Source: Octopus bimaculoides (lineage: Eukaryota). From it: a stretch of 64,000 nucleotides of DNA. The notes beneath the pieces were generated by a model that saw only the letters and a list, made by a program, of their open reading frames with translations, was not told the origin of the DNA and ran no database searches. The stretch is from contig NC_068989.1 of the NCBI RefSeq assembly GCF_001194135.2, positions 4,759,632 through 4,823,631 on the forward strand, written 5' to 3'. This document shows positions 2,765 through 63,990 of this stretch, piece by piece (the first letter of the stretch is position 1; every line of letters starts with the position of its first letter). The position numbers and the translations under genes were made by a program.

Positions 2765-3312
2765 CACACGCATATCACTCCTCTCTTTATGACACACCAT
2801 TTTCCTTAACAATTCAGAAATGGAATGCCTGAAGTGACTTTTTTAATTTCTATGTTAATTTTAAAATTGTTCAATGGAGGTGAAGATCAGACATGCTAAA
2901 TCCACAACAATTGACTTAATTAGACCTTTGGACAGGATATGTTCATCTGACCTGTTTGTTGCTGTTACTCCACTCCAGATTACTCTCATCCAGTAGACCT
3001 ATAATCAGTGGTATTCCAGCTATGATCATCTTGTTGTAAATGAATGTGCATTCATTTCCTATATTCTACATTAACATGTCTGACTATAGGGAAATATTAG
3101 CTTACTTGGGAGCTTACCTTTTTGATAGGAAACCAGATTATTGCAGGTAACATCCCCTGATGACTTGGTGCCTATTGCCTGGTAGTTCAGTGAACTGAGA
3201 CAATTTCAAATAAGGTTTTGCTCAGAAGCACATAAAAATTCTGCTTTGCATCAGACTTAAACTTGTGATTCCACAAGGAGGTAGTCAGACATTACCCACA
3301 GTAATATAGAGT

Positions 3313-3466
3313 AGCTGTGTTGTATGTAGCTTGCTTACCAACCACATGGTTCCAGGTTCAGTCCCACTGCATGGCACCTTAGGCAAGTGTCTTCTACTAT
3401 AACCTCAGGCCTACCAAAGCCATGGGATTGGATTTGGTAGACAGAAACTGAAAGAAGCTTGTCGTG

Positions 3467-3497
<31 letters not shown>

Positions 3498-3700
3498 TTG
3501 TGTGTCCGTGTTTGTCCCCCCAATATCGCTTGATAAGTGATGCTGGTGCATTTATGTCTCCGTAACTTCGCAGTTCAGCAAAAGAGACCAATAGAATAAG
3601 TACTAGGCTTACAAAGAATAAGTCCTGGGGTCAATTTGCTCAACTAAAGGCAGTGCTCCAGCATGACCACAGTCAAATGACTAAAACAAGTAAAAGAGTA
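3313..3700 (+). mobile_element. SINE-B, near full length, with internal (TA)/(TG) microsatellite
   Basis: Head CCAACCACATGGTTCCAGGTTCAGTCCCACTGCATGGCACCTTAGGCAAGTGTCTTCTACTATA (B-box-like GGTTCAGTCC); tail GTGCTCCAGCATGACCACAGTCAAATGACTAAAACAAGTAAAAG; many paralogous copies in the window. Confidence 0.85.
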
Positions 3701-3735: not shown

Positions 3736-4560
3736 AGGGGAAATAGCAAGTATTCTGTGGTTTAATCAGTAGTAATGTTGTTGCTGAAAAATCAATCAAC
3801 TTGTTTCTCTTTTCTGATTTAAATTGATTATTATGTCTAATATAATTTAAGTTAAAATTTTAGCATTTAATTTGTAACAATAATTATTATAATAATGATT
3901 TCTTACAGAGGTACAAAATCACAAATTGTATGGTTGAAGAAATGGGATATTTGCATTGTCTATATATTATGGCTAATGACTTTGCCATTATAATTTATAC
4001 TAAGAGAATCACTGTCCTCTGCGTGCGTTTCTCATAGTTTATGTATTATATAATGATGACTTTTTCTCTCACCCTTATGTACATGTGCTCATGCGCACGC
4101 ACACACACACGCACACACACACACAGAGTACTACATTGCCTAGTGTGTCCTTTCCTAATTTAAATGATAGGGTGAAATCTGAAAGGAATTTAGGTCAAGC
4201 AATCACATAGAAGCTTCCTTAAACATCAAGACTAACTTACATTGCTATCATTTGACAAAAGAAAATGTTTAGTGGTGAAATATGAAATATGAATTACATA
4301 GGGAATGTGATAGGTAACAAGATGAAGGGTTGGTGATGTTTCAGTTACATATTTTGATATACTTACATGAGCTTTCTTATAAGTGAAATGAATTAACTAC
4401 TGTTCAGAATTGAAACCAAATTGCAGACTTGGCTTGCCATAAGCTTACTTGTTTATCATTTATCAGTTTCTATACTATGTTAATAATAGTAGTATTAATA
4501 GTAATAATAATAAATTCCTCTTTTGTTGTCAAATTATGTATTGTCGTTGATAAAGACTTG

Positions 4561-4627
4561 AAATTAACTTGTTTTCTTTTATTTCTTTTGCAGGTAAGTT
4601 GACCTGAGCTTTTCATATTTTGTGAGT
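4561..4627 (+). other. Candidate recursive splice site (ratchet point) with cryptic RS-exon 4594-4621
   Basis: Branch-like TTAAC (4564-4568), pyrimidine tract TTTTCTTTTATTTCTTTTG, CAG (4591-4593) directly followed by GTAAGT (4594-4599), and a second donor GTGAGT at 4622-4627. Confidence 0.6.
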
Positions 4628-4756
4628 AAAGTACCAATCAATTATTTTTTATAATTTACTTTCCGTTGGTTTTGATTTAATATAGGATCTTTTGATTAGT
4701 GAGAGACTGGATGGCATCAGCAAAAACATTGATGGTTTATATTCTTTTAGTGACAT

Positions 4757-4973
4757 TAAGGCAGCGAGCTGGCAGAACCGTTAGCACGCCGTGCGAAATG
4801 CTTAGCGATCTTTCATCTGTCTTTATGTTCTGAGTTCATATTCTGCCGAGGTCGACTTTGCCTTTCATCCTTTCGGGGTTGATAAATTAAGTACCAGTTG
4901 CGTACTGGGGTCGATCTAGTCGACTAGCCCCCTTCCTAAAAAATTCGAGCTTTGTGCCTAGAGTAGAAAAGAA
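4757..4973 (+). mobile_element. SINE-A (tRNA-derived), near full length, CpG-rich copy
   Basis: GGCAGAACCGTTAGCACGCC head, GAGTTCATATTC B-box-like, central GCCTTTCATCCTTTCGGGGTTGATAAATTAAGTACCAGTT domain, tail TTGTGCCTAGAGTAGAAAAG. Confidence 0.85.
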
Positions 4974-6530
4974 TTTCATTGGATTTTAGTATGTATTCTT
5001 TGTGCTCTTTTATCATGTGTATAACATGTATTGGAACACATGCACATGACACTGTTTTGTACAACACAGTTGAATAGATGGAAGCTGGTTAACATTATGT
5101 TGCAGTTCTGTTCCTTCTTGTTTGGTGGGCTGTAGATTTCAAGACAATATTACTAGATTTCAAGGCAATTACGAATTACATATCTAATAATGTTGTACTG
5201 TTTTTTTTATTCCCCCCCCCCCTGTAACCTCATTTATCACTGATTCTTTCATCACTGGTCTGAGAAAATATGGAATACTCAATTTTGAACCATGTTCACA
5301 GATTGATCCAGGTACTGAGCTCTGGGACAAACTTACAGCTCTATGCAGTGCTGAAAAGTTGACAAATTAGTACAATCACTTGGAGTGTTAAACTTCTATC
5401 GGGCTGAGTAAATTAATGTGCATCAAAAAGTTATCTAAAAATAAATGTGGTAAGAAAATATAAAAAAAAACATCTTACTTAAGGACTTATATTCATTATT
5501 CTAATAAGTTTGAGAGGAAAGTCCAAACATGTTTTGGTCTTATGCTGACCTCATCAACAAAGCATAGCCTCCATTGTACCACCAAAGTGGTTTATAAAAT
5601 AAAAACTAAGTAAAATGTATTTACATTTACTAAAGATTTTACATTTTGTAGCATAGGAAAATGAAATGGTTTAAAAATAAAATAATTTATATATGTAGTG
5701 AATCTTCATGAAATGCAACGATTAAGTTAGAAAGTAAGAATATTTAATGCAATGGACATTACTAAGCTAATTAGAATGAGATAACTTGTTCTAAATGCAC
5801 TTATGGTAAACGAAATGAACAACTCCCATTTTTATTGAACTTCTGCTGCTACTTAAAGTGGTGAATTTATACTCACATGAAGTGCTTGTGTGTAGTGAGC
5901 GTGACTTGGTACCGGATGATTAATAGCTATATCTTTTGAAGAAAGCTCTATGACAACAGAAATGTACTCTGGTCTTTGATTTTGTTTTCCTTGGTGGTGG
6001 TTTTCCCTCAATTACACCAAAGTGCTGAGATCTCTATTTACTATAGCCACCCACTTGTTGAGGAGCTGCAGTTTCCTTGTGTGGTCAGCCATAGCAAATG
6101 ATGTTCCTATGGTTGTCTAGCACTGTGTGTGTGTGTGTGTGTATGTTAGAGAGAGAGAGAGATTTTGGATTTTGGGCAATAATAAAAGTACCCACTACAT
6201 ATAAAATTTATTTGATTATTCCAAGCTTAGAAGAAAAAAGTACACACACACACAAACACACACATAAAATTGCAACATTTATGATAGAATTTGAACCACT
6301 GACCTCCTATACCATTTACCTGGTACTTATCAAAAACACACATACAGACACACACAGACACACACACCAGTTCATGCATGGGTGTTTGAAGAACAAACAT
6401 TGATGTTGTTAATCTTCTGGAATAAACAAAAGAGGATCAGGGAACTTCTGAGGAGATTATGTTGCTCTGAAGTATTTGCTGACTCGCGTTTTTTTCTCAA
6501 CTATTGCCACAACAAACTACTTTTGCAGCT

Positions 6531-8330: not shown

Positions 8331-8480
8331 TTTTACTTGTTTCAGTCATTGGACTGTGGCCATGCTGGAGCACTGCCTTAAAGGACTTCAGTTGAATAAA
8401 TCAACTCTAGTACTTATGATTTTGTTTTGTTTTTATGAGAATGTAAACAAACCTGCAGCAGTTGTCAAGTGATTGCAGGA
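8331..8480 (-). mobile_element. SINE-B tail fragment
   Basis: TTTTACTTGTTTCAGTCATTGGACTGTGGCCATGCTGGAGCACTGCC is the reverse complement of the SINE-B tail. Confidence 0.8.
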
Positions 8481-22389: not shown

Positions 22390-22720
22390 TAGAGAGAAGG
22401 AATTGGAGAGGGCATTTGTTCCTGGGGGTTACAGGGAAATCTCGGACAGTGGGGGTTCCTTGATTATCCCTAGAGGCCTTCCCGTATCAGGAGGGCCACA
22501 TTTCTATCATCCTCCCCGCCACATTTTTTTTTAAAACCCTTGTATACTATGCAAATGTCCCTTTTTATTCAGTGTATACCGTATATACTTACTTTCTTTC
22601 ATTTTTTTTTTAATCATTTCCTTGTATGAAAATCCCCACACTTTATGCCTGTCTCTGTATTGTTCCCCACATCCTTCGCCCTTGTGGTAAATAAATGAAA
22701 TTATTATTATTATTATTACT
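22390..22720 (+). mobile_element. Probable 3' end of a non-LTR retrotransposon
   Basis: GC-richer body ending CCCTTGTGGTAAATAAATGAAATTATTATTATT (AATAAA plus (ATT)n tail); a similar tail GGCTAATAAAGAAATTATCATT lies at about 15790-15810. Confidence 0.45.
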
Positions 22721-22944
22721 AAGGTGGCAAGCTGGTAGAATCGTTAGCATGCTGTGCAAAATGCTTAGTGATATTTCATCTGTCTCTATGTTCTGAGTTC
22801 AAATTCCGTTGAGGTTAACTTTGCCATTCATCCTTTTGGGGTCGATGAATTAAGTACCAGTGAAACAGTGAGGGGGGGGGGATCGATGTAATTGACTAAT
22901 CCCCTCCCCCAAAATTTCAGGCCTTGTGTGTATAATAAAAAGGG
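22721..22944 (+). mobile_element. SINE-A, near full length
   Basis: AAGGTGGCAAGCTGGTAGAATCGTTAGCATGC...TCATCCTTTTGGGGTCGATGAATTAAGTACCAG...CAGGCCTTGTG. Confidence 0.85.
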
Positions 22945-24998: not shown

Positions 24999-25409
24999 NN
25001 NNNNNNNNNNNNNNNNNNNNNNNNNNNNNNNNNNNNNNNNNNNNNNNNNNNNNNNNNNNNNNNNNNNNNNNNNNNNNNNNNNNNNNNNNNNNNNNNNNNN
25101 NNNNNNNNNNNNNNNNNNNNNNNNNNNNNNNNNNNNNNNNNNNNNNNNNNNNNNNNNNNNNNNNNNNNNNNNNNNNNNNNNNNNNNNNNNNNNNNNNNNN
25201 NNNNNNNNNNNNNNNNNNNNNNNNNNNNNNNNNNNNNNNNNNNNNNNNNNNNNNNNNNNNNNNNNNNNNNNNNNNNNNNNNNNNNNNNNNNNNNNNNNNN
25301 NNNNNNNNNNNNNNNNNNNNNNNNNNNNNNNNNNNNNNNNNNNNNNNNNNNNNNNNNNNNNNNNNNNNNNNNNNNNNNNNNNNNNNNNNNNNNNNNNNNN
25401 NNNNNNNNN
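24999..25409. other. Assembly gap (N run)
   Basis: Ns. Other gaps: 27568-27632, 29726-29735, 30599-30608, 33029-33786, 56394-56415. Confidence 1.
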
Positions 25410-26029: not shown

Positions 26030-28084
26030 AACAGAAAGTGAAATCAAATAGATAATTCTGTATTAGTGCAGATATCGGAAACTGATATGTGCGTGTTTGT
26101 GTGTACAATCACACATGCATATATGTGGGTGTGTGCGTATAACTGCAAATATATTTAGACAGTCACAAACAAAGGCACATTTACTAAATGTATGCATATA
26201 CATTTACAGAGAAGTACCTATACACACAAACACATGCACACACAGTATACAGCCATATTTGCAGATGTACACTCAAACATATTCACACATACACACAGAT
26301 TTGCTATGCCACATAATTACACAAAAGTATACATACTCATATTCATGTATAGAAATATGTACACACATGTATACATTTGTGCACTCACTCATTCACATAC
26401 ACGCACATATAGATTAAATTATGTCCCCACATTTGCATATGTCTAAAATGTATATACTCTCTTTCTAAAGCACACAGATATTGTGTGTTCAAGATACGTC
26501 TGGTCTTAGAATGTTAGGCAAATTAAATTAAATTCAGAGTAAGATTAATATCTTGAATAAAATCACTGTTGAATATTTGCAAATTATTTTATTTTCCATA
26601 ATGAAATTACATTGAAGTTGATGCAGAAAAATGTAGTTTCAGATTGAAACACAGATAACTAAAGGCTGGCAGTAGCACTGAGCTTGAAGTACACGAGTGA
26701 TTCTACCTGTTATTTTTTAACACATCTTTTCCCATTCATCAACTGTGGTTAAGCAGGATTATGATCTAAGACATTCCAGTTGTGACCATCTTGTCTTTTT
26801 TAAATCATATCTAGAAGACCACAAATTTTAATACATCCCCCTTTTTTTTTTAATATGGTAGTGTGCAATTGAAGCAGATTTATTTGTTATTTTTTGCAGT
26901 TGAGTGACTGCATAGAGGCTCTATTGATGTCTTGCAATGGCTCTAGCAGAAAATAGAAATGAAAGATAACCCATCAAATTGTCGTCAATGCTTGGTGTGT
27001 CTACAGGAATCATTGAGTTTCTACATTCTTGCTTGACCTCCTTGAAATAGCCCACAAATTTTCACAATATATCTTACTGCCTTAAATGGAAGAACACTTT
27101 GAGTAAGTTAGATACACTATGTCTCTCCCCTCCATAAGAAAAGACAAGATAACTACTATTGGAATACAGTTGCTCATACAACCACTTGATGAGCCTAACT
27201 TGGGATTAAATAACTTCAACTGCAGCAACGTACAACACCTTGGAATGAGCTTGTACATGGTTGTTTGACCCATGAGAAATAATAGCCAAGTTTGTCTTAT
27301 CACACATTATATCTTTAAAAAGGAAAAGATAGATCAAGCTTTATACACCTTCTCCATATCTTCAATAGAAATACAGAAAAGAAGATCACTAAGGAAAAGT
27401 GATGAGTAAGTGAAGAAGAGAAATCTGAATTAAAAAGATGTATAGTTCAGATGAGCTGGGTATCTACACACTCATCTAAATGTATCATCTGATGTTTGTA
27501 AAATGAACAATACTGGAAAATACCCCAAAGTGAAGATGCTGTTTGAAGGTATATAAAGCATTATCAANNNNNNNNNNNNNNNNNNNNNNNNNNNNNNNNN
27601 NNNNNNNNNNNNNNNNNNNNNNNNNNNNNNNNGGAAAATACCCCAAAGTGAAGATGCTGTTTGAAGGTATATAAAGCATTATCAAAGTTGAAATCTAAGA
27701 AAGGTTCCGTATTTTTCAAGCTTTAGGAAAACCTTCAGCTATTCTGATGTCACTTTATGTCAGTTTGGAAGATGGATCTTGCAGAATGGTTTTTATCGTA
27801 GTTATTTGAGATTATATGTACAAGATGACTCAAAAAAAAAATGGATCATGCAGTGGAAAGAGACTCTTGGAATGCGGATTGAACACTTGAGAGACAAACA
27901 CCGTGTTGTGTATTGTGAAGTAGTGTATGCATGAATGGCTTTGAATATGTGTTGACAACTGTAAATAAATTCTATCTTGTTTGGAAAAGAATGACAGTGA
28001 AAAGAAGACAATGTAACTATAGAACCTTTGCTTCAATGAATTTTGTCTAAAGCAGGCAAGCATACTTGGATATGTGGTTGTAAA

Positions 28085-28350: not shown

Positions 28351-30545
28351 AACCCAGGTGAGCTAATATAGAGAGAACAATGCAAATAAGCAAATAAATA
28401 TGCTTGGGTTTGATATATAAAATATATATACATATACACATGTAAATACAGAAAGGGATATATATAAAGATGCCAATCTCTCCACCCTAAAGAAAGAGGT
28501 TGGATTTACGATACTGTTTATATGCATCCACTACTGGTTGCATATACCTGACTTTTTGCATGTTCCATCTGCCAACATTACAACTATTACATAATTCTGT
28601 ACTCCCAAAAACAGTTGTCGAACCTGAAATATCATGCCCTCTCCTTTTAGTTTTCTGCATCTTTGCACTCTATGTAAATCTGCTCTGTAAAATATATCAA
28701 TGTCTTTATGTTTACACATGAATGTTCATCTCATGAATATTTTCAGTTTTTGTTTACACACACACACACACACATATCCCTATATATATTTGCATGTATA
28801 TATGTATGTATATTTTATGTATCAAGCCTGAGTATGTTTATTTGTTTATTTGCATATATATATATATATATATATATGTATATGCATGTATATGCACATA
28901 CACATACCTATAAATATATACATACATTTACCTATATGTAACTATATGTATGCTCTTTCATTCTACCTCTCGTCATTCCAAATTTTTGTAGTCATTCATT
29001 CATACATTTATTTTGCATTCACTTTCTTCATGCTTTATTGCATTGTTAAAGAATTCTTAACATATATGAATTATTATTATTATTGCTTTCTCTATAGTTG
29101 TTCTTGTTGCCATTGTTCTTTTCTCTTTACTAGAATTTTTGCTTTTGATATTTCCTATCACATTAGGACATTTTTTCTGTATCTAATCTCCTGAGAAATC
29201 TCTAAAAAATCTCTTACTCTCTCTTACTTTTCTCCCCCTCCCCTCTTTGTCTCCCTTTTTGTTTCCTTCTTCTCTCTCTGTCTGCCTCCTTTTCTCCTCC
29301 CCTTCTCTCTCACGCAGAAACTTTTTGCCTCTATTCATCAGGTCCTCCTCCTCCTCCTTTTCCCTTTCCTTTATCCCTACCTTAGAGTTTCCCTTTATTC
29401 GTCTCTGTCAGTATATCTCTCTGTCTGGATAGCTTATCTCTCTATAAATCATATATATATTGCAATCTATTTAGCTCTATGTCTGTCTGCTTACCTCATT
29501 TTATGATACCTGTTCTAGATATCTACTTGTCTATATATCTTTGTCTCTCCACATCAGTATCTAGTCGTCTTTGTCTATCCATCAATATCTATCCAATTTT
29601 CTCTGTCCATTTGTGTCTATCCATCCCTATAGGTACGTTTTTGTACATTTATCTGTCTATTCATCCATCTATGTTCTTTCTATCTAAATGTGTCTGTTTA
29701 TCCTGTTCTTGGCTCTGTGTGTGTGNNNNNNNNNNGTGTATCTTCATTTGTCTATTCTTAATTGTCTATATCCTTTGTGTATCTGCCTTTCTTTGTCTAG
29801 CCATCTTTATCTATATGTCTCTCTCTACCCAAGTATGTCTATTTCTCCATGCATGTTTGTTCATACATATCTAGCCACGTGTGTGTATCTACCCACATGT
29901 GTCTATCTTCATGCATCCATCTGTCTATGTCTATCCGTCCATTTTTTTGTCTATTCATGTGTATCCATCTAGGTCTATCTGTAATTATCTGTGCCTGTGT
30001 ATCTACGCATATGTTTATCTTTTATCTATCTGTCTGGGTCTGTACCTGTTTAACAATCTCTTTGTCCATCTTGCTAACTACCTCTCTATCACTGTACACA
30101 TCTCTTTTCACTCTATCCTCCCTCCCTCTCTCTCCACACATTTCCAATACTCAACAAGAAGAGTTTCTGATCTCGTTCGACAATGCAATTATTGATTACA
30201 ACATTGCATGGCATTGTGCTTTTAGCTCACTGAATTAATTTTCATGCATTCTCATCATCATTTTACCGTTATTGTTATTGTTATTATTATTGTTGTTGTT
30301 TTCTACCATATATATTCTAACAAGTTCAATTTATAGTGTTTGCCAACTGTGACAAACACAGAATGGTAATAAATTAAAATATTGATGTTCTTGTGTGAGT
30401 GTTTATGTGTGTGAGTGTGTTTATGTATGTGTGAGTGTGTTTTTGTGTGCGAATGTGTTTGTGTGTGTGTGTGTGTTTGTGTGCGAGTGTGTTTCTGTAT
30501 GTTTGATGTATTGGCTTTCCATTTCACTTCTTGTCTGATGATCAT

Positions 30546-30598
<53 letters not shown>

Positions 30599-30608
30599 NN
30601 NNNNNNNN

Positions 30609-32888: not shown

Positions 32889-34664
32889 GCACATGCATAC
32901 ATACATATACATACATGCATACATGCACTTGTGTGCATAGTGTTATTGTTTAGTTTCATATAGTCTCTATTCAAGCAGATCTATGATTAAAGGCCTTTTT
33001 TTTCATGTTTTTCCAGTATCTGGATGAANNNNNNNNNNNNNNNNNNNNNNNNNNNNNNNNNNNNNNNNNNNNNNNNNNNNNNNNNNNNNNNNNNNNNNNN
33101 NNNNNNNNNNNNNNNNNNNNNNNNNNNNNNNNNNNNNNNNNNNNNNNNNNNNNNNNNNNNNNNNNNNNNNNNNNNNNNNNNNNNNNNNNNNNNNNNNNNN
33201 NNNNNNNNNNNNNNNNNNNNNNNNNNNNNNNNNNNNNNNNNNNNNNNNNNNNNNNNNNNNNNNNNNNNNNNNNNNNNNNNNNNNNNNNNNNNNNNNNNNN
33301 NNNNNNNNNNNNNNNNNNNNNNNNNNNNNNNNNNNNNNNNNNNNNNNNNNNNNNNNNNNNNNNNNNNNNNNNNNNNNNNNNNNNNNNNNNNNNNNNNNNN
33401 NNNNNNNNNNNNNNNNNNNNNNNNNNNNNNNNNNNNNNNNNNNNNNNNNNNNNNNNNNNNNNNNNNNNNNNNNNNNNNNNNNNNNNNNNNNNNNNNNNNN
33501 NNNNNNNNNNNNNNNNNNNNNNNNNNNNNNNNNNNNNNNNNNNNNNNNNNNNNNNNNNNNNNNNNNNNNNNNNNNNNNNNNNNNNNNNNNNNNNNNNNNN
33601 NNNNNNNNNNNNNNNNNNNNNNNNNNNNNNNNNNNNNNNNNNNNNNNNNNNNNNNNNNNNNNNNNNNNNNNNNNNNNNNNNNNNNNNNNNNNNNNNNNNN
33701 NNNNNNNNNNNNNNNNNNNNNNNNNNNNNNNNNNNNNNNNNNNNNNNNNNNNNNNNNNNNNNNNNNNNNNNNNNNNNNNNNNNNNNATAATATAATGTTT
33801 GTGTGTATAGGTTCAGTATGGTTGAATGTTTAAGATTACTTAGCAGGTCCTGGTTTCAATTCTGCTATGTGGCATCTTGGGAAAGTGCCATCTTGGGTTA
33901 TTGTAATTCAAAGGCCCAGCTGGATAAGGGTGAGCTGGATGAAGTGGAGGCTTTTAAAATGCACAGAATGCACTTCTGCAGTTGATGGGACTAATTACAC
34001 TACAACTTGTGGCATGTTTTACTTTGCAGTGGGGGAGAGAGAGAGACAGCTTGGTTCCCAAAACAAAGATTATGAGCTCCTATTTCTAAGCATTCATTTA
34101 TGTCTCCATGCCATAGTTATGGTCTTGTTGAAGCGATATCTGCTACTCAACAATGATTGCTCTGGAAACCATTAAACTTCTAAATGCTATGGTTACTTCA
34201 ATAAAAGGCTGTCAACAGTAATTTGTGAATTTGTCTATCTATAAAATCCAGGCTAATTATGTAACAATGTGATGTGTGTAGTGGCTGAATCAGCTGAGAC
34301 ATGCTTATGCAGCATGTATGTGTGTTTTCACTCTGCCATTTCATAATAGCTACATACAATAAAAGTTTTTTTATTTGTAAAGAATGACCTGTTGTGCACT
34401 TGCAGAATTATACAGCTCAGGGTTACTATAGGGAAAATTCTTCTGATGTTATGTTTTTTTAATTTGCTTTCGAATCTGAGAAAAATTGTTAAATGTGTCA
34501 GAGTATTAGTAATTATTGTTGTTGATTAGCCCCAGATCAACTTTGATTGGGCAAAACCTTGATCTAAGCCATTCTAGCCATGGCTTATCCTTTAAGGGAT
34601 ATGAGTGTTTGCATTTCGGTTTTGTATTTGGTTTGCAAGGTTCTTTATGTGAATTCGTGTGTTG

Positions 34665-34959: not shown

Positions 34960-35390
34960 CATTAAACCTTTTACTTCTTATGGAGATTAGGCTGTCAATG
35001 ATTTTTCTTCACTGTTCTCAATTCTGGATTGTCCTTGCTATCTCTTTCCGGTTGGATCTCGGTTTCTTCAACTTTGCCTCAGTATCCTGCTTCATATGTT
35101 TCCTTGAGAAAAGACCTTTCTCTCCTAGATCTTGTTGGTTATGGATTGTCATCGATGCTTCTATAACTTTGCTTTTAAAGCAGGGGTGTCAGCCTTATGC
35201 AAATCCATTTTTACCTCTGGGAAGAGGTGGTCTATATTAGCCTGATCCCTATCTGTTGACTTGTCCAGTATGGGAAGCCCTACAAGGAGTTTGCACTCTG
35301 CTAGCATAGCTCTCAGGGTCATTGAAGTACTTAAGCGATCACATTGCAACAAGTACAGGACCTTGTGATGGATATAGGTATATAAAATTA
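34960..35390 (-). mobile_element. RTE-clade LINE 5' UTR / start fragment
   Basis: Minus strand TCAATGACCCTGAGAGCTATGCTAGC...CTCCTTGTAGGGCTTCCCAT...GGCTGACACCCCTGC...ATCGATGACAATCCATAACCAACAAGATCTAGGAGAG resembles RTE (Expander-type) 5' ends; assigned from recollection. Confidence 0.55.
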
Positions 35391-36658
35391 CATTATCCTT
35401 TTTCATCTTTGATAAGACTCTAAGGTATGATTTGTGGAAGATTTGGATGTTATTTCTAGCAGTTTGAATGATCCTGTGGAAGCATCCTTGGTGCACAAGT
35501 ACAAGTGCACAGAAGTATATGTGTTTGATGTATTTCTGCATATTTGTGTGAGCTATTGTTGTTGTTTAGGTTATCTCTGATCAAGCAGACATATCAAAGA
35601 TGCTCCATTTCTGACCAACCTGTCTTTTTTGTATATCTAGGTATATTTTGCAACATCTCTCTCTCTCTCTCTCTTTCCTTCTCCCCATCTCTCTCTCCCT
35701 CTCTCTCAAGACAGAAGGGTATTATTTGAGTGAGTTTTTGCCACTATAGCTATTAGATTGAGTGACTGCATATAGGCTCCATCATTCATTTGTGTGCATA
35801 AGTGTATATTTGTTTAGTGTAGTTGGAGCCAGTTCGGATAGATATTAGCTTCTAATTATGACATTCTAGACATTGCATGCTGTCTATCCCTTACTGTAGC
35901 AGGATATTTCCTAACTTGCATCCCTCTCTCTATCTCATTAAAGTTAAAACACGCCACAAGTTTGTAGTGTAATTAGTTCGCAGATGCTCACATTATCAAT
36001 TGCAGAAGTGCATTCTGTGCACTTTAAAAGCCTCTACTTCAGCTCACAGTCAACCAAGCTGAATATATCCCACTGTGGTTCTTGAGTACACCCTGTGAGG
36101 AGGTCTGGACATGTTGATATCAATGTATGTACGTGTGCATGTGTATATATATATATATACTTGTATCCAAGTACAGATATGCACATGTGTAAGTGTGTAT
36201 AAATACATTCATGTTTTCGCACCATGTATATGTGAGTGTTAATATGTCTGTATTTGTGTGTGTATATCTAGGAGTGAACTCAGAATTTAAGTATTCAGTG
36301 AAGCATTCAGCCATTGAGAGATATGGTTACAAGTTCCACCTCTCTCTTTCCCCACACCTTCCCTATGTTTATATTTCTCCTTCTTATGCCTGTTTATCTA
36401 CCTTATCACTTAATTAAATCAATTCTGTACACATTCACACATTTTAATCTTGCTCTTGTATTCTTCCCTCTCCCCCCTCTCTATCATTTGCATGCAAACA
36501 CATACAAATATACTCCCGATTTCATTTTCTTCCTCTCTTGCTTTCCGTGTGTATGTGTGTGTATATATACACAAATACACACCAAGTTAGACACAATTTC
36601 TCTTTCTCACACATAGGCATATTTTCATATAAACATACTTATGTGTGTATGTATTGTA

Positions 36659-38796: not shown

Positions 38797-39009
38797 GAGA
38801 TGGTGAGTTGGCAGAATCATTAGCACGCCAGACAAAATGTTTAACAGTATTTTGTCTGTCTATGTTCTGAGTTCAAATTCTGCCAAGACCAGCTTTGCCT
38901 TTCATCCTTTTGGGGTAACTAAAATAAGTACCAGTTGAGTACTGGAGTCGATTTCATTGACTTAGCCCCTCCCTCCGAAATTGCTGGCCTTGTGCGAAAA
39001 TTTGAAACC
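38797..39009 (+). mobile_element. SINE-A, full length
   Basis: GGTGAGTTGGCAGAATCATTAGCACGCCAGAC...GCCTTTCATCCTTTTGGGG...AAGTACCAGTTGAG...GGCCTTGTGCGAAAATTTGAAACC. Confidence 0.88.
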
Positions 39010-41334
39010 ATTATTGTTATGTTAATTTACTTATTCCATATCTATCATACACAATAAATTCATCTCAACAGACAGGGCAAATTATCTATGAGAATTGAAA
39101 ATTAGAATTTATATTGTTTTTCTTTGTAATTCTTGGAATGTATTTTCTTAGATATTAATATGTGCTGATTTGTATCGATTTTTTTTTTACTACAAAATAA
39201 GGGAAAATTTTTCTTTTTCTTTTTTTCATTTTTTTTGTATTAGTTTATTTTAAAATATTGATATTAATAAATGTTTGTTAGATATTTTTTAATGTGCCTA
39301 TGTATTCGTCTGTGTACTTGCACACGTACATCGAGAGATTGATAAAGAGGTGAAAGAAAAGTAAAAAAAATGAGAGAAAATGGTGAGGAATGAAAAGAAG
39401 AGAGAAAGCAAAAATGAAAGCAATAGAGCAGGATAGGAAAGAAACAGAAAGAAGTGGTATAATTAGACTATAAAAGAGAAGCTGTTTTGGAACAGAAAAA
39501 CATAGGAAAAAAAGAGAGGGTGGGAGATGTAGAAAGAGAGAGAGAGCACTAGAGTAAAAGATTAATTGAAAATACTAACTGAAGAAAGTTGTTTGGCCTT
39601 AGGTTGGCCCTGAACTAGCAACCCTCTCTATAACAGACCCCAGTCTGTTGCAAGCATTTGAACCAGGCATCTTTCTGTTGGTAACTCATTCTGATGTGTT
39701 ACTTCTCATTGCAACAACCTTTGAGTAATGGTTTCTCCACCCATCCAACCCCAACCTCATCTGTCCTGTAAAAAGATTATGTGTCTTGCCCTTCTTCTGA
39801 CTAAACCATTTAAGAAATATTCACAAGCCATGATCATCCAATGCTTTTTCTAGTCTTAGTGTATCTACGAATAATTTTCAAGTGTATCCTTCCCTTTTTT
39901 TGGTTGTCAAGATAGTAGCCTGTGATTTGAGGGTGACTTAGTTACTATTTCTAATAGGTTCTATGCCCATCTAGTAATTCTATGATAGAAATCTGGTATG
40001 ATTTGCTAACCCTTCTGATTATTATATCAATTGTGGCCTGTTCTGTAATTCTTAAGAAGGTCACAAAATTAAGAAAGATGGTCAAAAGAAGTTTAACCAG
40101 TAATTGATACTATGAAGTGCACTCAATTTTAAGAACAAAAGCCTTCTATTAGCCACACTTTATACAGTATGAGCCAGTGAGGAGCATCTATGCTAGAACT
40201 AGCAGACAAATCTATCATAATACTCTACTGTCTGGTAGACAAAACATGAAACATCTTTGATCATGTGTCAGCTCAATCACAGCTGATTTTGAGCTTTAAC
40301 AACTCTATACAATTTAGCTGAACTGACCTTCAAAGGAAAGTGTTACTTTACAGTCTTAAGATGTCCATTCATGCATAAAAATAACAGCTGTATATCTCTG
40401 TCGATTTGAAGTCAGTTTTCCCATGTTGACATACTTTACATGAGTTTCACAACATCTCACAACTTGTTGCAGTCCTTGTAATCTGGTACACATGCAGTTA
40501 TAAAGAGAATCAGCAAATCATCCATTTTTGTTGTTGCATGTCATGTTTTCACATGGTTTTACAACTGAATGTTATCCCTATCACCATCCATTTTACAACA
40601 TGGACTGGATGCATTTTATCTACTCTGTATCAATGTTTTATTCAGATTACTACATATATATATAATACACACATACATAACATATATCTATCAAGCCAAT
40701 AAGGGAACCTATGTGTATATCTATAGCATGTGTATCAATATATGAATATGGAAATGCTGTGCATGTGTACTTATATAAATCTCTAGATTCATGTACATGC
40801 AATGATGCATGCGCATACACGTACATAACTTTAGTATTAGGTTCCCTAATGTTTGTTAATGTTAGGTAGTGTATTGCAAGTTATAAATATCGGCTGGAAA
40901 TGTAGAGGTGTTGGAGAGAGAAAGGGGATAGATTCCAAAACAACAGTAAACACTCATAGCAACAATAATTTCTTATGTAAGTATCAAAGAACAAATTTAT
41001 AAAGAGAGGCTGTAATGGATAGATGGATGAAATTGCAGTTTTCTTTATTTAAACACTACCAACAGCATTGAGCCAATGAGAGAAACGCCATGTAGATGCT
41101 TGATCTGCTAGAAATAATAACAAAATCCACTTCAAATGACACCCTACTATTTTTTAAAACAAAAGAAGTATATTTTGGGTAATGTGGTCTTAGATACATT
41201 TTATTTGTAACAACAAAGACAGGTTAGGACGTCTGAATAGTCTTTGCTTGCTCATTGATTGGCTTTTACCTAGAGGTAAAGGAATTGGTCAATATTTGGT
41301 TGCTTGATCACCTACAAATATCAGTAAAATCTCC

Positions 41335-48589: not shown

Positions 48590-48960
48590 TAGACTACGAC
48601 TATGCTGGCATGGGTTGGACAGTTTGACTGAGGACTGGCAAGCCGGGAGGCTGTACCAGGTTCCAATCTGATTTGGCAGTGTTTCTACAGCTGGATGCCC
48701 TTCCTAACACCAAGCACTCCAAGAGTGTAATGAGTGCTGTTTACGTGCCACTGACACAGTTGTCATTGATCTGACACCAGCATCGGCCACAACTACGATC
48801 TCACTTGGCTTAACAGGTCAACACAAGCATGGTATATTGCCATGAGGACAAATGCTCGAATGGTACTTTTTACATGCTACCAGCACAGGTACCAGTCAGA
48901 CAGCACTGGCATTGGCCACAACTACAATCTCACTCGGTTTGACATCACTGCTTTCATGAG
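48590..48960 (-). mobile_element. Family C repeat with internal subrepeats
   Basis: TATGCTGGCATGGGTTGGACAGTTTGAC...TTTCTACAGCTGGATGCCCTTCCTAACACC; duplicated GGCCACAACTAC(G/A)ATCTCACT(T/C)GG unit. Confidence 0.8.
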
Positions 48961-53564: not shown

Positions 53565-53850
53565 ATACAAGTTCCTTCTGCTGTAGCCCCAGGCCAACTA
53601 AAGCTTTGTAAATGGATTTCATTGACAGAAACTAAAAGAAACCCTTTGTATATGCATGTGTGTCTGTGTGTGTGTGTGTTACTGTCTCCTTTCCTTGACT
53701 TTGCATGATAGTTGTAAACATGTGTCACTGACATGCAAGCTGTGTCCTTTGTTTCCAGTCTTCCCTGTAAACATGTCTAGTTATGGGAAATATCTTACTT
53801 GAAAACAGTTAAGAGTTGGTGACAGGAAGAGCATCCAGTTATAAAATCCA
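53565..53850 (+). mobile_element. SINE-B variant (B body plus alternative tail)
   Basis: CTGTAGCCCCAGGCCAACTAAAGCTTTGTAAATGGATTTCATTGACAGAAACTAAAAGAAACCC, microsatellite, then CTTGACTTTGCATGATAGTTGTAAAC...ACATGTCTAGTTATGGGAAATAT...GACAGGAAGAGCATCCAG. Confidence 0.7.
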
Positions 53851-53984
53851 CTTCAACCACTAATGTTGATGATAATGATGAACCTATTGAAGCTGGTGCT
53901 ACTAAATCATTGGATTCTACCTCTGGTTGTGCATGATTTTCTTCAGATATTTCTCCTGGCATATTTCCAAATTGCAGAGATGTT

Positions 53985-54210
53985 GCATTTTTTATACATA
54001 GTACCCAAGTTTCGGTGCTGTGTATGAGAAGGGGTATAACAACTGCCTCATATTCCATAAGTTTGGTTATCTGGTTTTTTTGAGATGAGTATCTAAGTAT
54101 CATGCTCTGAGACGGTTTGTGTTGGTGTGCTTTATCTAGTGTTGGATCTCTCAATATCTGTGATAGATGGCTACCTAAATGTTGAAAGTGTTCTGTATTT
54201 TCCACCATAC
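53985..54210 (-). pseudogene. RTE-clade LINE reverse transcriptase C-terminal fragment
   Basis: ORF-track peptide VENTEHFQHLGSHLS...ITKLMEYEAVVIPLLIHSTETWVL matches RTE thumb-region motifs (LE.V..F.YLGS..S / TKL.VY.AVV...LLYGSETW). Confidence 0.8.
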
Positions 54211-56393: not shown

Positions 56394-56419
56394 NNNNNNN
56401 NNNNNNNNNNNNNNNATAT

Positions 56420-56700: not shown

Positions 56701-56704
56701 AAGG

Positions 56705-57065
56705 TTGTGTGGTAAGAAGCTTGCTTTCCAATCACATCGTTCTGGGTTCATTCCCACTGCATGGCATCTTGAGCAAATGTATTCTACTGTAGCCTTGGGT
56801 TGACCATATACGTGTGTGTGTGTGTGTGCGTGCGCATGTGTGTGCGTGCACATGTGTGTGTGTGTTTGTCCCCCCATCACTGCTTGACAACCACTGCTGG
56901 TGTATTTATGTCCTCGTAAGTTAGCGATTCAAGTAAAACAGTATGATAGAATAAATACCAGGTTTTAAAAAAAGGCAACTAAGTATTGGGGTCAATCCAT
57001 TTGACTAAAAATTCTTCAAGGTCGCGTCAACATGGCTGTAGTCTAATGACTGAAACAAGTAAAAG
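56705..57065 (+). mobile_element. SINE-B, full length
   Basis: GTGTGGTAAGAAGCTTGCTTTCCAATCACATCGTTCTGGGTTCATTCCCACTGCATGGCATC...CATGGCTGTAGTCTAATGACTGAAACAAGTAAAAG. Confidence 0.88.
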
Positions 57066-62243: not shown

Positions 62244-62496
62244 ATCATCATCATCATCATTGTTTAACATCCGTTTTCTATGCTGGCATGGGTTGGACGG
62301 TTTGACTGAGGTCTGGAGAGCCAGCAGCTGCACCAGGCTCCAATCTAATCTGGAAATGTTTCTACAGCTGGATGCTCTTCCTAATGCCAACCACTCTGAG
62401 GGTGTAGTGGGTGTTTTTTACATGCCACCGGAACAGGAGCCAGTCAGGTGGGCCTGGCATCGATCACATTCAGATAGTGCTTTTTACATGCCACCA
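62244..62496 (-). mobile_element. Family C repeat, well-preserved copy
   Basis: ATCATCATCAT...AACATCCGTTTTCTATGCTGGCATGGGTTGGACGGTTTGAC...TTTCTACAGCTGGATGCTCTTCCTAATGCCAACCACTC. Confidence 0.88.
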
Positions 62497-63819: not shown

Positions 63820-63990
63820 GTGTGGCTGTGTGGGTAAGAAGTTACTTCCCAACCATGTGGTCTTGGGTTCAGTCCCACTGCATAACACCTTGGGCAAGTG
63901 GCTTCTACTATAGTATTGGGCCAACCAAGGCCTTGTGAGTGAATTTAGTAGATAGAAACTGAAAGAAACTGTTATGTGTGTGTGGTGTAC
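63820..63990 (+). mobile_element. SINE-B head
   Basis: GGCTGTGTGGGTAAGAAGTTACTTCCCAACCATGTGGTCTTGGGTTCAGTCCCACTGCATAACACCTTGGGCAAGTGGCTTCTACTATAG. Confidence 0.88.

Follow-up and report, generated by a model that had tools for sequence, protein, structure and literature searches.

Cephalopods have large genomes, rich in repeats, with very long neuronal genes, and the question at stake is whether their giant introns are handled in the invertebrate way, by means of ratchet points, or in the vertebrate way, with few such sites. One locus in a stretch of 64,000 nucleotides from Octopus bimaculoides (the whole of which is called the window here) raises this question, as an earlier note on this DNA had described a putative recursive splice site and a short, stop-laden cryptic RS-exon at positions 4561-4627. 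For insects and vertebrates recursive splicing is an established fact, and in the sea urchin it is suggested by an enrichment of the motif (Shepard et al. 2009). The site in the octopus is a good, unproven candidate for a recursive splice site, with sequence features that match those of fly ratchet points wherever they were checked. Its actual use, within a long intron of a + strand gene, is a serious possibility somewhat short of probable.

The motif and its anatomy can be read directly from the DNA (Table 1). The composite acceptor and donor reads TTCTTTTATTTCTTTTGCAG/GTAAGT, where the slash marks the splice junction, and conforms to Yn-N-YAG/GTRAGT. The description in the earlier note held throughout. 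Reading of the sequence and script indexing place the branch-like TTAAC where it had been reported, and the pyrimidine stretch of 18 nt corresponds to positions 4572-4589, with 17 pyrimidines among the 18 positions. The direct contact between CAG and GTAAGT is correct to the base, and the second donor, GTGAGT, does follow 28 nt on. The intervening segment, whose length is not a multiple of 3, has one stop in each frame, as had been claimed (TAA 4595, TGA 4600, TGA 4605). Direct reading also identified a TT at -6/-5 of the acceptor (4588-4589), a feature absent from the earlier note, and an AG-free zone of 36 nt (4556-4591) that contains the pyrimidine tract. The position of the candidate branch A and the AG-free zone are results at the level of motifs only, and TTAAC is weak evidence for a putative branch point, as it is a motif frequent by chance in AT-rich DNA.

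Table 1. Features of the candidate recursive splice site, in positions of the window
Feature	Positions	Strand	Remarks
Branch-point-like TTAAC	4564-4568	+	Fits yUnAy; candidate branch A 4567, at -27 from the acceptor
Polypyrimidine tract	4568-4590	+	T-rich; 20/22 pyrimidines over 4568-4589
CAG acceptor, putative recursive 3' splice site	4591-4593	+	Junction after 4593
GTAAGT consensus donor, abutting the acceptor	4594-4599	+	5' splice site that the joining of an upstream exon to 4594 would regenerate
Putative cryptic RS-exon	4594-4621	+	28 nt, not a multiple of 3, stops in 3 frames
Downstream donor TTT/GTGAGT	4622-4627	+	Exon side non-consensus
Further donor-like TTA/GTGAGA	4699-4704	+	Read by eye, unscored

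Because its exon side (TTT) departs from the consensus, the donor at 4622 is weaker than the putative recursive donor, and this agrees with the donor competition predicted for a skipped RS-exon. An exon of 28 nt is below the size usually deemed comfortable for exon definition. The donor-like motif at 4699 would close an alternative RS-exon of 105 nt (4594-4698), which may be of a more comfortable size for this purpose. The site lies within an AT-rich stretch (~3770-4757) that occurs only once in the window. The claim that this DNA is not repeated is therefore sound within the window, where no second copy was found at up to 3 mismatches and no repeat family extends across the site; a repeat origin of the site was rejected on these grounds, within the same limits.

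In order to determine how exceptional the composite is, every AGGT on both strands of the window was scored with a crude position weight matrix (summed log-odds of the 3' and 5' splice sites). The candidate has 27.6 bits and the runner-up on either strand only 17.4 bits, which supports the statement in the earlier note that no other AG/GT of such quality exists in the window. Likewise, a search for Y16-N-YAG/GTRAGT with at most one mismatch returned the candidate as the sole match in the window, and none of 100 shuffled sequences had a match. Shuffling understates pyrimidine tracts approximately 40-fold, because the pyrimidine runs of the real DNA are destroyed: Y16 tracts with at most one mismatch occur at 1,248 positions in the real sequence versus 32 in the shuffles. 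The expectation for the composite was computed with the real tract frequency (~1%) in place of the shuffle rate, giving ~0.005 composites with the perfect core per 64-kb window and ~0.023 for YAG/GTRAGT. The core itself, CAGGTAAGT, is at chance level, with one occurrence observed in the window versus 0.56 expected, and YAGGTRAGT was observed once versus 2.33 expected. GTRAGT was found 75 times in the window (74.5 expected), which corresponds to about one per 1.7 kb per strand, and at this chance-level density a second donor within 50 nt has a probability of ~3%. In a genome of 2-3 Gb, chance would produce ~200 composites with the perfect core, or ~900 with YAG/GTRAGT, of which only a handful would have a second donor within 50 nt. 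The composite is thus rare per window and not rare per genome. Since the site was picked out of a scan of many windows, its rarity is by itself no proof of function.

These frequencies count against the recursive reading, given a core at chance frequency and hundreds of chance composites per genome. The site could have arisen by chance, from a T-rich tract that happens to adjoin the core 9-mer in AT-rich non-coding DNA; it would then be intergenic, antisense or intronic at noise level, and have no selected function. The abundance of pyrimidine tracts in real DNA and the choice of the site from a many-window scan point in this direction, and we give it considerable weight, short of an even chance. 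Published base rates point the same way, with ~0.07-0.12 such motifs per 100 kb on control strands and in intergenic DNA across all the animals studied (Shepard et al. 2009). In the same survey, which includes no mollusc, the motifs show a 4-22 fold enrichment on the sense strand of introns beyond 50 kb in sea urchin and four insects, and one of only 0.9-1.5 fold in the long introns of vertebrates. Against chance stands the agreement of independent features: the complete constellation of perfect 9-mer, TT at -5/-6, AG-free zone, branch motif at -27 and second donor is expected only ~1-2 x 10^-4 times per window. In addition, the spliceosome could hardly ignore a near-consensus acceptor in a transcribed intron; should the site lie in sense orientation within a long intron, the acceptor would very likely be engaged and the regenerated GTAAGT used.

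The surroundings of the site bear on both of these readings. ORF, Pfam and protein-homology searches detected no coding exon or gene across the 64-kb window, and no Rfam family or tRNA was identified in it. The lack of any gene sign favors a chance motif, and the lack of exons, RNA genes and protein homology is also compatible with deep intronic DNA. The window would be either a deep intron or intergenic, and intergenic DNA would look alike. ORFs of at least 70-110 amino acids were considered as exons and rejected, being translations of microsatellites or repeats. When the 10 least repetitive ORFs were compared with Pfam, two matches emerged, both below threshold: PIEZO (17.4 bits) and Bt_P21 (17 bits). 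The PIEZO-like ORF (126 amino acids, 35161-35541, - strand) was also rejected as an exon, with a score that is below the cut-off of 29.6 bits and no homologue among 5.8 billion proteins, and its match is probably spurious; a GT follows ...CCAGAG at about 35214 in this ORF. For the ORFs that span the candidate site, four exact look-ups in the protein collection returned no record. A chimeric protein query, composed of ORFs around the site and an ORF from a SINE as positive control, had no match either, the control included, so the collection seemingly lacks the non-coding ORFs of this genome. A 24-mer from the site had no match in metagenome contigs, the DNA collections holding no cephalopod genomes.

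Base composition provides a hint about strand. On the + strand, T exceeds A in 28 of the 32 bins of 2 kb that make up the window (positions 1-64000), with a mean AT skew of ~-0.066 and a slight excess of C over G. Introns of Drosophila and human are reported to have more T than A on their coding strand. The persistence of the skew is thus a weak hint at + strand transcription, under a rule that comes from fly and human and with a possible contribution from repeats. To this extent the window-wide skew argues against a chance motif.

The recursive reading can be described as a sequence of steps, for which we infer the transcription, the strand, the intronic context and the actual use of the site. 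The host gene would be transcribed on the + strand, with the site inside one of its long introns. Branch point, pyrimidine tract and CAG acceptor, aided by the donor at 4622 or that at 4699, would be recognized as a tiny cryptic exon, and the upstream exon would be spliced to 4594. This junction would regenerate a consensus 5' splice site, exon/GTAAGT, able to out-compete the weaker downstream donor, and a second step would then remove the cryptic exon together with the remaining intron, so that the mRNA keeps no trace of the event. Should the cryptic exon be included by mistake, its stops in 3 frames would direct the transcript to nonsense-mediated decay. The weighing of this reading was made with rough estimates, combining a prior of ~0.2 for sense-strand intron, taken as a fraction of the genome, with the hint from the skew and an enrichment factor between the vertebrate-like and the invertebrate-like values.

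A close parallel is found in the intronic ratchet points of Drosophila, known from Ubx, kuz, Bx and other genes (Burnette 2005, Duff 2015, Joseph 2018/2021). Fly ratchet points are tandem acceptor/donor sites in long introns with an unusually strong pyrimidine tract, and 99.5% of them have TT at -5/-6, versus 44% of ordinary introns. The branch points of fly recursive lariats peak near -30. The octopus site shares the tandem arrangement, the T-rich tract, the TT at -5/-6 and the YAG/GTAAGT, and its candidate branch A lies at -27. It is also similar in its short, out-of-frame, stop-containing putative cryptic exon closed by a weaker donor. The RS-exons of flies are ~50 nt long, show little conservation and are out of frame as a rule, and their closing donor loses to the regenerated donor of the ratchet point; the putative RS-exon found here has 28 nt instead of ~50 nt, the sole misfit among the sequence-level criteria. 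Another difference is the spacing of sites. The host introns of flies extend over 11-133 kb and their recursive segments average ~18 kb, whereas the 64-kb window has a single site, with no second one of any quality in the other 60 kb. Moreover, the evidence that defines the fly sites consists of junction reads, saw-tooth coverage, lariats and deep conservation, whereas the octopus site is known from its sequence.

Recursive sites of vertebrates, found in very long neuronal genes, are also similar, with a YAG/GT followed by a downstream donor that defines an RS-exon with premature stops; there, donor competition decides between skipping and inclusion (Sibley 2015; Blazquez 2018). Those sites differ from the present one in having been identified from RNA data, in annotated introns of at least 100 kb, and in being conserved. 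The motif by itself predicts little in vertebrates, the ratio of sense to antisense being 0.9-1.5. A third comparison is with the pseudoexons or poison exons of long introns, such as the DMD pseudoexons, in which an acceptor-donor pair also encloses a short segment with stops. Pseudoexons do not need a consensus donor that abuts the acceptor, and such an abutting donor is the distinctive feature of the octopus site.

In a second alternative, the site would be an ordinary exon boundary. It could delimit a cassette exon of small size, either non-coding or poison (4594-4621 or 4594-4698), or else CAG/GTAAGT could be the donor of an upstream exon of a 5'UTR or lncRNA, the T-tract being incidental. 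A strong acceptor followed by consensus donors at distances of 28 and 105 nt is what such a cassette exon would have, and stops in all frames would fit a UTR, a lncRNA or a poison exon; in mammals, most RS-type exons are in fact expressed and not fully suppressed. In addition, frame +1 is open from 4429 through the 4593/4594 junction. This ORF is, however, a low-complexity translation of (TAA/TAG)-like sequence without homologue in the protein collection, and a cassette exon that opens with the stronger donor should normally be skipped. We consider an ordinary exon boundary rather unlikely.

Another possibility would be that the site is not spliced at all and acts as an isolated strong binding site of U1 snRNP, which keeps a long pre-mRNA from being cleaved and polyadenylated too early (telescripting). 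The 5' end of U1 snRNA can pair with CAG/GTAAGT along its whole length, and the DNA around it is A/T-rich, both of which would suit this role. Nevertheless, it would leave the adjoining acceptor signals without explanation, consensus donors are no more frequent across the window than expected (as given above for GTRAGT), and + strand transcription would be needed here as well. A pure U1 binding site appears highly improbable.

If true, the recursive reading would add a third bilaterian lineage to those whose giant introns are served by ratchet-point splicing with a cryptic RS-exon, and the very short RS-exon, of 28 nt, would test the limits of exon definition. The earlier note was aware of no description of recursive splicing in cephalopods, and the literature searched indeed has no report for octopus, squid, cephalopods or molluscs, the co-mentions being incidental. 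A used recursive site in a cephalopod long intron would have no documented precedent among molluscs or lophotrochozoans, an outcome that we regard as a serious possibility, not quite as probable as its opposite. To a specialist, a confirmed cephalopod site would be expected rather than surprising. One confirmed site would not settle whether cephalopods follow the invertebrate or the vertebrate way; it would justify a genome-wide count of the motif in sense versus antisense orientation.

The remainder of the window is composed of (CA)n and (TC)n microsatellites, SINE-like repeats and six assembly gaps. A SINE family of ~215 nt, which starts with GGCAGCGAGCTGGCAGAA..., has three + strand copies that are ~80% alike (4758-4975, 22720-22940 and 38800-39010), the first of which starts ~165 nt downstream of the candidate site; ARAGORN called no tRNA in this family. 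Further interspersed repeat families are present in both orientations, 65-94% alike: one at 3311-3459, 56701-56849 and 63822-63970, a pair at 3647-3695 and, inverted relative to it, 8331-8379, and a pair at 48650-48791 and 62327-62468. An ORF of 137 amino acids on the - strand (53795-54208) resembles by eye the C-terminal part of a decayed LINE reverse transcriptase (...LLIHSTETWVL...), and has no match in Pfam or in the protein collection. The six gaps are runs of N, 1,276 N in total (24999-25409, 27568-27632, 29726-29735, 30599-30608, 33029-33786 and 56394-56415), and most of them border on (CA)n or (TA)n microsatellites.
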